A stretch of 64,000 bases of DNA from Blastocystis sp. Blastoise (lineage: Eukaryota > Protista > Bigyra: Opalinata). The first letter of the stretch is position 1. Each line of letters opens with the position of its first letter. The notes below the pieces were generated by a model, which saw only the letters and a program-made list of their open reading frames with translations, ran no database searches and had not been told where the DNA came from. Location: positions 124,001-188,000 of the forward strand of contig JBBPEB010000026.1 in the NCBI GenBank assembly GCA_039096225.1, in the 5' to 3' direction. Positions 20,601 through 57,332 of the stretch are shown piece after piece. The translations under genes and the position numbers were made by a program.

Positions 20601-23600
20601 ATTTTCATCAATTATTTATATTTACATTCACTCAAAATTCTCAAATTATGTTTAATATTCTTGAGGAATTAATTTTTTTCTGGGAGAAACGTAATTTTCC
20701 CAAAAATATATGGCAGCAAAAGAGTCCTATAGATATATTATCTGAAGAAGAAAAAGATCAAATAGTATATAAATATATACATCAACCTATATTATTAATT
20801 GATGATTATTTTAATGAAGAGAATGTAATCGATATTACAAGTGATAATAACAGTAGTAGTAGTATTGGTATAAATCCACTTGAACAAATGAGCTTTGGAA
20901 GACAAAATAGTATAGTTGATTTAAGTAATTCAATTAGTCTTTCTTTTAATAAATCATATACTAGTGTTGGCACGAATACAAATAATAATAATAATAATAA
21001 TAATAATAATAATAATCTTATTAATATAATGAGAAATAGTAGTTATTATAATACAAGTAATAGTATCGTTAGTATTAATACTCCAAATTCAAATATATCT
21101 TCAAATAATCTTGATTATTATCATTCTAGAAATTCTTTAATGAATAATACTAAGAATAATCAAAGTATTCATTTATTAGGAAACCTTCACACTATGGATA
21201 ATAATAATAATAATAATAATAATAATAATAATAATAATAATAATAATACAGATACATATAATAATAATAATAGTTTCACAAATACTCGAAGAAATAGTGA
21301 TAATCGTATATTACCTGATATTTTCTTTAATTATGATAGTAAGAATATAAGTATGCGTTCTTTACGTGAAGGATTTGGAGGAGAAACAGGAAGCCGATAT
21401 AGTCTATTGCATCCAACCGAATCTGTGCGAAATAGCGTGAATTTAAGTATTAATAATTATATAGCTAGTGCTACCGACAGTATAAGTGATGATGATGAGT
21501 ATGTCACACAAGAATTAGAAGGATTAGATGTGCATATAGCTAATATATCATGGCATAATATGATCAGAGTATATATATGTTTATTATTATGTTTTTTTAT
21601 TATTATTTCTTTTTTTTATTATTATTATTTTTATTTTTATTATTTTTCTATTTTTTTATTATTATATTTATTTGTTTTATTATATTTATTTTTAGATCAT
21701 ATTGATAAAAATAATTTATTTATAATTATACTATTCTATCTTAAGGATATCATTATTTTTATTTTTATTAATTCTATTTAATATATAATATTTTTTTATT
21801 TGTATTTCTATAGAATGTATCTCATTGGTTACCTTGGGGGGAGAATAAGGATTTAGACCAATTAATTGAGACTTTACTTCATATTTCGAATATTTATAGT
21901 AATACCTTTGATTATAGTCCTATTACTCCTTCTATCGAATCCATTCTACATCCTTATTCTTATGATGATCAGTATATATATATTATTATTATTTGTTATA
22001 GATATTGTTATTATTTATTATATATATATTATTTATTATATATTTATTATTATTAAATATATAGATTTTACAATTTCTTTATTCTAGAATTATTATTAAT
22101 TATAAATATATATATATATATATACTTCTTTTATAGATCAAATATTACGATGAACTATAATAAATCTGTTTTCAGTCATGTGCTTGTGCTGAATTCTGTT
22201 ACAAGTCAGAAACTGTCTCTATTTCGTATTTACCTTCAAATCTCATCTTCATGCTCAGCTTTAATGTTTATTAAATATCCTATATATACTATTATTATTA
22301 TATATTTATTATTATTTATCTGTTTTTATGTGTTTTAACTCTTATAAGAATAAACTCTTCTTATCATATATATATATAGTATATCTCTCTCTGCATATAT
22401 ATCTAATTATATAACTTATCATTCTTATTATTAATATATTCCCTTAATATCTACTTCTCTTGCTCTATCTCACCTTCTCTCTCTTGTACCTTCATTCAAT
22501 TCTCTCTCTACATCACTCACTAAAACTATTATCAATATATTCTATGAAATATCCAAGAATTTCCGCGGAAATGAGTCAGATCGTAATAAGAATGGATATT
22601 ATATGCCGTCTCTATTATATATAATTCAATTCTATTTTAATAATAATAGTCACATACAATATGCATCGAGATCTCTTCTTAATATCCTTATATATATATA
22701 TATATTATTATTATTATTATTATTATTATTATTATTATTATTATTATTATTATTATATTTGTTTATTATTATTATTATTATATAAATTCCTTAATTTTAT
22801 TTATATCTCTATTTGCGATCACTTCCAAATAACAGAGATATCATCACAAATATCATTCTCCCGCGATTAAAAGCATATAAAGAGTCATTATTTGAAGATA
22901 ATCAGAAATGGAGTGTTCTCGTTTGCATTTGTATCATTGCACGTGCCACGAGGTTCTATGAGAAGCATCTATTATGTGACACCGTACAACAACTCATCGA
23001 TATTCTTAATAAAAAAAGTATATGTTTTTAATTATATATATATAATATTACACTAATTGTTATTTATTATCATATACTAAATATTAATGATAATATAATA
23101 TATATATATCTTCTATAGAGCTTCTATCAGAATCGATGGAACAGGACGTCATCAGCGTCGTTTTCCGTTTATTTCCCATTATTCATGATATCGATCCCGC
23201 GCTTTCTTCAAAGTTCCCGCTATTAGACTCTATGAAATATATTGATATCAAAACAAATGCGATTAACAATACTATCACTATATCCTTTTCTATATATATT
23301 ATTATTATTATTAATATTATTATTATTATTATTATTATTATGTTTATTGTGCTTATTATATTTATTATATTTATTATGTTTTTATATTTTATTATTATTA
23401 TTATTATTATTATTATTATTATTATTATTATTATTATTATTATTATTATTATTATTATTATTATTATTATTATTATTATTATTATATATCCCTAACCTAA
23501 TACTCCTTCCTCATATATGCCAACGAGTCGCCATATACATTCTTCACACAAATTATCACTAAAATTGATGATATGTATATATATATATATATCAGTCAAT

Positions 23601-56100: not shown

Positions 56101-57332
56101 AAATCATTTCGATTGTTTATAATAATATTATTATAATCATATAAAGTACGATGATTTTCAGACTCATTCCCGCGGGAATTAGACTCCGAAGAAGTAGACG
56201 TAATATGAGATAATGTAAATATATAGATATAGAAACAGGGAATTGAACTTAATTGCCTATATATATGGTAATATTAATATAAATATATATATACTTAAAG
56301 TTCTCTTCTGCATGATCACCAGTAAAAAGTGCTATAAATATAAATAGTTATAATATTAATGATTATTATATATACAGGCAATTAAATTAAGATGTTTCAA
56401 ACGTAATGAACACGGGGAAATAAGTAATTGTTTCCAAATATAAAAGAATAACCACGGGAATTTGATAGTACATGATGTTCTATCATTCGAAGAAAGGGCA
56501 AAATTAATAATAGTATCATATCTATATATATATAAAGATAATGAAATAGAGAGATACTATATATATATATATATATATATATATATATATATATATATAT
56601 ATATATATATATATATACTCTTGAATAGAAAGAGGAATAGAGATAGACCGATTTAGAATTGTATATATATAACGAGAACCAATAGATTGACATTCTAAAG
56701 AAAGATATATATATATATATAATAGAATATATATATATATGACAATAATAATAATATATATATATATATATAATATATACTAGAATTATCTTCTAAGGTA
56801 CATAATCTTTGTAAATGAGTCCATAAGGCGCATCGAACGGCGGGAGATTCGTTGTTAAAAAGCGCGGCAATAGAAAGAAGTGGCGACTGTGATATATACA
56901 TAGAACAGAAGTATAGTAATGAAGGAAGAATATATATATATATAATAAATATAATAATTATAATAATATAATAATAAAAATACTTAATAAAATATAAATA
57001 TAATATATATATATGGATATATCAGGTTGATCTAAGAGAGAGGTGAGATAGGAGATTATATCGACAAGAGCAGAGGGAGTCGGACTATTAGCAGTCAAAT
57101 AGGCATATAAATCCGTTATACACTCAGGTCTATATAGAGAATAGGAGGAAATAGCATGTGATAGAATAAAATAATAATACTATATATATACTTGATAAAA
57201 TTATCTTTAGTATAAATAAGAACATAAAGAGCAAGTATATTAGTTCGCAATAAAGATAATTCCTTAGTAGAAAGCGAAGGATATTTACGGTTATATTCAG
57301 TTTTCTCATCAATATATAAAGATGTAAGATAT
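50144..57332 (-). pseudogene. BEACH-domain protein (PH-BEACH-WD40, neurobeachin/LYST-like), apparently 5'-truncated, with an in-frame TAG
   Basis: FRRKYLYQDIAIEFY (PH); AGRSFNNLAQYPVFPW; YRDLSKPIGALN; YGTHYSS; DVKELTPEWYY; VILPP*A; WIDLIFGYKQKG; FGQCPSQLF; then WD40-like exons. TAG at 52017-52019. Confidence 0.8.
56911..57020 (-). other. U12-type AT-AC intron
   Basis: Minus strand 5' ATATCCAT; branch TTCCTTCAT; 3' AC 9 nt after the branch A. Phase-0 join LLDQPD|FCSMYISQ; no usable GT-AG pair. Confidence 0.8.

Follow-up and report, generated by a model that had tools for sequence, protein, structure and literature searches.

Minor introns in Blastocystis

Blastocystis ST1 has been reported to carry 346 U12-type introns, typically AT-AC, in 319 genes and among 35,412 introns, together with all four minor small nuclear RNAs (snRNAs) and all seven specific proteins (Gentekaki et al. 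2017, PMC5608401). A later survey counted 253 minor introns in ST1, of which 77% are AT-AC and 49% lie in phase 0; they average 42 nucleotides (nt) in length. Their phase distribution resembles that of major introns, recent gain was considered possible and within-clade comparisons were requested, while a small number of them were found to be conserved with an animal (Larue and Roy 2023, PMC10639083). Here we describe five introns that are very probably U12-type, judging from their sequence, in a 64,000-nt stretch of DNA (hereafter the window) from a genome that very probably belongs to a Blastocystis of the tortoise gut, either isolate Rus-B or one very close to it. Three of the five sit in a single large gene.

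The genome of Rus-B, an isolate from a Russian tortoise, comprises 33 scaffolds, 33.3 Mb and 8547 genes at 23.1% guanine plus cytosine (GC); its introns are longer than the 30-nt introns of human subtypes, and tortoise and human isolates share 40-42% amino-acid identity (Lind et al., PMC12129017). Minor introns are not treated in that paper, and our literature search found no other paper on minor introns in Blastocystis. Outside the genus, the minor introns of Physarum polycephalum are described as dwarfing all other cases (Larue, Elias and Roy, bioRxiv 10.1101/2020.10.12.336362).

Our preferred reading, to which we give a probability of roughly 0.8, is that the five intervals are genuine U12-type introns, that the window is a local cluster of the complement already known in the genus, and that the three introns of the large gene were inherited. 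We speak of a cluster mainly because that one gene carries three of them.

Five probable U12-type introns in the window

All coordinates are those of the window; reading frames were verified one exon at a time, and the codons at the junctions were read manually. The initial annotation had described five intervals that begin with ATATCC, carry a branch motif resembling TCCTTAAY, lack usable GT-AG ends and restore the reading frame when removed, and all five turned out to be as described. Three are found on the forward strand of the gene it had called WDR7-like. The first, 22275-22454 (180 nt, phase 2), is an AT-AC intron that starts with ATATCCTA (its 5′ end is also given as ATATCCTAT) and has the branch box CCCTTAAT, a spacing of 6 nt and a terminal AC (...TTCCCTTAATATCTAC); after its removal, the flanking frames join as AA|T. 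The second, 22682-22804 (123 nt, phase 1), starts with ATATCCTT (ATATCCTTA) and has its branch box TCCTTAAT 9 nt before the 3′ end (...TTCCTTAATTTTATTTAT). Since neither AC nor AG was found within reach of this end and the frame must be kept, we place its terminus at AT, the exact 3′ boundary being derived from frame and spacing only, and it is thus a U12-type intron with AT-AT ends. The third, 23280-23503 (224 nt, phase 0), is an AT-AC intron made up mostly of an (ATT)n repeat, with the start ATATCCTT (ATATCCTTT), the branch box TCCCTAAC, a spacing of 7 nt and AC (...ATCCCTAACCTAATAC).

The other two are AT-AC introns on the reverse strand. Read from 29159 to 29086, the intron of a CLPTM1-like gene (74 nt, phase 1) starts with the same ATATCCTT (ATATCCTTT) and has the branch box TCTTTAAA, a spacing of 7 nt and AC (...TCTTTAAATCTTTAC); AG is absent from its 3′ part, and its flanking frames are open. 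In a BEACH-domain gene, the intron read from 57020 to 56911 (110 nt, phase 0) starts with ATATCCAT (ATATCCATA) and has the branch box TCCTTCAT, a spacing of 8 nt and AC (...TTCCTTCATTACTATAC). Here the exon exceeds the intron in GC by 0.39, and the sole GT...AG pair that we found as an alternative leads into a stop. No usable GT-AG ends were found in any of the three introns examined for them (56911-57020, 29086-29159 and 22682-22804).

Taken together, ATATCC opens all five introns, in its longer form ATATCCTT in three of them. The branch boxes match the consensus at 7, 8, 7, 6 and 7 of eight positions, and all of the boxes end 6-9 nt short of the 3′ end; the terminal dinucleotide is AC in four and AT in one (22682-22804). 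In all five intervals the read-through frame meets stops, and the flanking frames are open and in phase once the interval is removed. The phases (2, 1, 0, 1 and 0) show no bias away from phase 0.

Given that the window has a GC content of only 22.6% and holds ATATCC at about 30 sites on both strands, we compared the introns with chance expectation. A strict scan required ATATCC, a branch match of at least 7/8, no fewer than 20 open codons to either side, a read-through frame interrupted by a stop, and a GC content higher in the exon than in the intron by 0.15 or more. It gave 5 matches in the window, four of the five introns being recovered, against a mean of 0.52 for 89 decoy hexamers of the same composition. 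A permissive U12 scan was uninformative (6 real matches against a decoy mean of 4.1), and a count of GT-AG introns by open-frame continuity had no specificity and was useless, because decoys scored as high as GTA. Among the rejected candidates, 52915-53033 on the reverse strand is an ordinary GTATAT...TATAG intron, and 51638-51696 on the same strand seems to be contained in an ordinary GT intron (the open reading frame (ORF) 51675-51953 is followed by GTATAT); the alternative ATATCC at 22549 is located inside an exon.

The names of the host genes are of unequal standing. When we searched the WDR7-like gene against Pfam, only weak beta-propeller and TLDc matches were returned, and PDB sequence searches were empty, so that this label is unconfirmed. 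Protein homology searches with the exon 22807-23016 and with 24059-24850 gave no match. The CLPTM1-like label rests on a reading by eye, since Pfam gave no match on its flanking exons (four short exons flanking this intron and that of the BEACH gene were searched). The junction of 29086-29159 falls in a stretch that, by eye, we take to resemble the C-terminal motif of CLPTM1. For the BEACH gene, downstream exons match the Pfam Beach family with E-values of 1e-17 and 5e-21, while a protein search with a BEACH exon returned a chance-level match only.

Conservation in a probable distant congener

For the exon 22456-22680 of the large gene, the only informative protein match was P0001, an 89-amino-acid ORF from gut-metagenome contigs, with 47% identity; the other sequences of that search (P0002-P0005) were repeat or low-complexity matches. 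The short contigs that encode P0001 come from one Logan run and from three ENA metagenome assemblies, of which at least one bears the name of a pig-gut catalogue. Among them, the Blastocystis-like contig L004 (40% GC, with GT-AG introns 31 and 33 nt long) is colinear with positions 21796-25911 of the window, and we take it to come, in all likelihood, from a Blastocystis of the mammal-associated clade. The identity between window and L004 agrees with the 40-42% published for tortoise and human isolates: it is about 45% at the protein level, with segments ranging from 36 to 47%.

All three introns of the large gene have AT-AC counterparts in L004, in the same alignment columns and phases. The first and its counterpart at L004:504-554 (51 nt) both follow the AA of a split Asn codon (phase 2). 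The second and L004:782-835 (54 nt) both interrupt the fourth codon past a common YASR, after its first base (phase 1). The third and L004:1271-1328 (58 nt; ATATCTTTT ... AC) both fall between codons, just before a 23-codon exon (phase 0). The introns have motif, position and phase in common with those of the window and otherwise no sequence. At 22682-22804, the terminus is AT in the window and AC in L004, which amounts to a change of terminal dinucleotide within one orthologous U12 intron.

The exon 22455-22681 (forward strand, like all that follow; 227 nt) separates the first U12 intron from the second and has a single open frame (frame 1). The exon 22805-23017 has an open frame and is followed by an ordinary GT-AG intron, 23018-23118, with the borders GTATAT...TATAG; the neighbouring GT-AG introns are kept in L004, where the counterpart of this one is L004:1076-1106 (31 nt). 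The exon 23119-23279, whose open frame ends in phase 0, precedes the third U12 intron and shows 36% identity to L004:1115-1279 (tblastx). The exon 23504-23574, which has an open frame of 23 codons and is followed by a GT-AG intron, is equal in length to its counterpart and shares with it a Y-x-F-F ... I-x-x-K pattern.

The initial annotation had seen three U12 introns in one gene and had inferred a lineage-specific expansion. The former is confirmed, but since the three introns occupy the same columns and phases in L004, they are older than the divergence of the two lineages and were not recently gained. L004 resembles the human and pig clade, whose published proteome identity to the tortoise clade is 40-42%, so at least some of these introns predate the deepest split sampled so far. 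Our searches found no relatives for the introns of the CLPTM1-like and BEACH genes.

Minor-spliceosome machinery

In the genome, we found genes for U11 (62.9 bits) and U6atac (63.8 bits; L002:1501-1617 on the reverse strand, that is G000:C21:544821-544937), both above the Rfam threshold, and a U12 gene that, with 46.8 bits, falls short of its threshold of 53 but keeps an intact branch-pairing box (GAGUAAGGAAA). At the default threshold, U4atac had no match in the genome. A relaxed search yielded one full-length candidate on the reverse strand (L028:1501-1635, that is G000:C8:151033-151167) with 29.7 bits against a threshold of 53. We accept it as a U4atac candidate because its 5′ end (UCGUCCUUAUCG) is a perfect 12-nt complement of CGAUAAGGACGA in U6atac, and because a K-turn-like AUGA...UGAG is present as well, along with an Sm-like AGUUUUUGA. 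Rfam family models miss this divergent snRNA. Of the minor-spliceosome-specific proteins, PDCD7 (U11-59K) was the sole one searched, and it gave one exon-sized match (25.3 bits against a Pfam cut-off of 27; E-value 1.8e-4). The U11/U6atac/U12 signature that had been read from the introns is borne out by the intron motifs and by snRNA genes for U11, U12 and U6atac, along with the U4atac candidate.

From the motifs, the frames, the snRNA genes, the positional conservation and the genome-wide excess described below, we infer that the five junctions are spliced and depend on the minor spliceosome, which would remove all five intervals. On the model of the known mechanism, the ATATCC(T)T 5′ site would pair with U11 and the TCCTTAAY-like branch site, at a distance of 9-13 nt from the 3′ end, with U12, after which U4atac/U6atac would take the place of U11.

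Genome-wide abundance

Patterns were counted over the whole assembly (33,340,088 bases in 34 contigs). The pattern ATATCCTT N30-300 TCCTTAAY gave 123 matches against 92 for its reversed control; with N5-9 AC added, the counts were 86 and 8. The broader class, ATATCCTT N30-300 YYCTTNAY N5-9 AC, gave 544 matches and 393 in the reversed control. Because the first reversed control (92 vs 123) looks too high, 86 of the 123 matches having a well-spaced AC, we added a decoy 5′ site, TATACCTT, with the same 3′ part, which gave 293 matches (349 in its reversed control). The excess thus comes to about 80 introns in the strict class and about 250 matches in the broader one. For the GT subtype, GTATCCTT N30-300 TCCTTAAY gave 15 matches against 14 in the control, that is no excess genome-wide. 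The initial annotation had noted that all five introns have AT 5′ ends and that none is of the GTATCC subtype; AT ends dominate genome-wide as well (86 vs 8), and the GT subtype likewise looks all but absent across the genome.

Among the five introns, ATATCCTT occurs in 3, YYCTTNAY in 3 and AC in 4, which, if independence is assumed, gives the broader class a share of about 0.29. On this basis we estimate about 800 U12 introns in the genome (range 500-1500), or about 1.5 per 64 kb. This would be about 1% of introns if the total is about 70,000, that is if the 130-150 introns per window of the initial annotation are typical. The usual genome-wide U12 share is 0.5% or less. The estimated share of about 1%, with that annotation's count as its denominator, is above that of most eukaryotes and equal to the published level of the genus. 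At a mean of 1.5, windows with at least five such introns are expected about ten times per genome.

We also examined an arbitrary 200-kb block, C3:600001-800000 (L008-L027; 22.0% GC), where we found five convincing AT-AC candidates at block positions 22946, 77983, 111511 (reverse strand), 183356 and 192512 (reverse strand). They are 68-137 nt long, start with ATATCCTT and have the branch box 7-9 nt before AC. At position 174323 of the block, GTATCCTTT opens an apparent 47-nt ordinary GT-AG intron without a branch box. According to the listing of broader-class (YYCTTNAY) matches, this block is itself a rich patch.

The share of 3-4% that had been proposed for U12 introns thus appears to be a property of the window, not of the genome. 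Since the estimated density matches what is known of a genus rich in U12 introns (346/35,412), the cluster is driven by one gene and the three introns of that gene are inherited, the inference of a lineage-specific expansion is not supported as stated.

Alternative explanations

The alternative that survives best differs from our preferred reading in origin only: Blastocystis would have gained most of its minor introns in a burst after diverging from other stramenopiles, instead of retaining them from the ancestor of eukaryotes, and the window would show old products of that burst. The major-like phase distribution from which Larue and Roy suggested recent gain (PMC10639083) is matched in the window, where the phases are not biased against phase 0, but the few ST1 minor introns reported to be conserved with an animal (PMC10639083) do not fit a burst of this kind. 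We consider it possible, though somewhat doubtful.

A more radical proposal is that minor splicing has been remodelled in the tortoise clade, with introns almost exclusively of the AT-A(C/T) type, several per gene in some genes, a single-copy U6atac whose pairing box for the 5′ splice site has changed although the 5′ box of the introns has not, and new U12 introns still arising in genes that are lineage-specific or were acquired horizontally. This seems rather unlikely to us. If it were true, Blastocystis would be a second system, after Physarum, in which to study the birth of minor introns.

Slightly less probable still is that the tortoise lineage has undergone an AT-AC expansion of its own, with 3-4% of its introns U12-type throughout the genome. 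It would account for five introns in the window and five more in an arbitrary 200-kb block, and as none of the five fits the counted pattern class, that class may represent a small part of the whole, which would then be larger than estimated. Nevertheless, 3-4% of about 70,000 introns would require 2100-2800 of them, whereas the excesses of about 80 and 250, with a class share of about 0.3, lead to about 800 (1.5 per 64 kb), and a distant congener has the three introns of the main gene as well. The weakest alternative, that the five are major-spliceosome AT-AC introns or chance motifs in AT-rich DNA beside misread exons, can draw on the frequency of ATATCC at 22.6% GC and on permissive scans that yield as many decoy as real matches, yet it is highly improbable in view of the strict scan (5 vs 0.52), the constant placement of the branch motif, 6-9 nt from the 3′ end, in each of the five, the retention of motif, position and phase in L004 despite otherwise unlike intron sequence, and the ATATCC and TCCTTAAC boxes, which U2-type AT-AC introns are not known to have.

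Several observations weigh against our preferred reading of genuine, largely inherited U12 introns. The U6atac 5′ splice-site box is divergent (GCCGAGAGA, where the Rfam consensus is AAGGAGAGA). Its context reads GAGCCGAGAGAAGG against a consensus of GAAAGGAGAGAAGG, and it is through AAGGA that U6atac pairs with UCCUU of the 5′ splice site. The gene is single-copy: a genome-wide search gave one exact match and one unrelated match with a single mismatch, and no second copy with a canonical box. The introns keep ATATCCTT despite the altered box. The intron 29086-29159 has the weakest branch motif of the five (6/8), and the protein collections searched returned no transcript-derived proteins of the organism. 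The genome-wide estimate rests on a class fraction from five introns, and its controls disagree, the reversed control seeming two- to three-fold too high for one pattern.

Other features of the window

A GC-richer stretch at 45000-47000 coincides with an intronless ORF of 814 amino acids on the forward strand (44800-47244), in a block of 35% GC. This ORF has a weak Pfam match to DUF4218 (E-value 0.0013), a domain that we take to be found usually with transposases, and it may be a mobile element; a contig search found no exact copy of it on record. A transfer RNA gene lies at 31721-31802 on the forward strand (Rfam, 56.8 bits); its match is 82 nt long against a model of 71 positions, and it may have a short intron or a long variable arm. 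The tandem repeat at 32532-32931 is open on both strands, with units that translate as GIIFQFQT or WNWKIIPV, and another long repeat occupies 24857-25038. In a search of sequencing runs, one polyA gut metatranscriptome was found to contain 21% of the words of the stretch 20000-29900.

Comparison with known systems

What these observations add is modest. The U12-rich trait reaches the deep-branching tortoise clade, whose introns, at 74-224 nt, are longer and readily seen; AT-AT ends occur in one intron; and the splice-site box of U6atac is changed. The three minor introns common to the window and L004 bear on the question of recent gain raised by Larue and Roy (PMC10639083), and the longer, easily recognised U12 introns of tortoise genomes would permit a full test of gain against retention. 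There is also a caution for annotation: gene finders limited to GT-AG introns would break roughly one of every ten to twenty genes here.

The closest system is ST1, which the present genome resembles in the predominance of AT-AC introns, in their estimated share of about 1% of introns, in about 5% of genes having one, in the four minor snRNAs (U4atac as a candidate here) and in the lack of phase bias away from 0. It differs in the length of the introns, which in the window are 74-224 nt long and extremely AT-rich, with microsatellites, while the ST1 mean is about 42 nt and those of L004 measure 51-58 nt. Compared with ST1, where it makes up 23% by intronIC, the GT subtype seems less common here (no excess over the control), and our estimate of about 800 (500-1500) may be two-fold above the 346 of ST1, although the methods differ. 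Unlike L004, the window has one intron ending in AT where the former has AC.

As in the AT-AC U12 introns of animals and plants, the 5′ box is ATATCCTT, the branch box TCCTTAAC lies 10-15 nt from the 3′ end, there is no polypyrimidine tract, and the U11 and U12 boxes are conserved in the snRNA genes. Unlike in human, where they make up about a quarter (PMC10639083), AT-AC introns are the majority class here, and the U6atac 5′-site box departs from the canonical one. Like Physarum polycephalum, this Blastocystis is a protist with an unusually large complement of minor introns and several of them in one gene, but the pattern excess here points to hundreds to about 1500 such introns.

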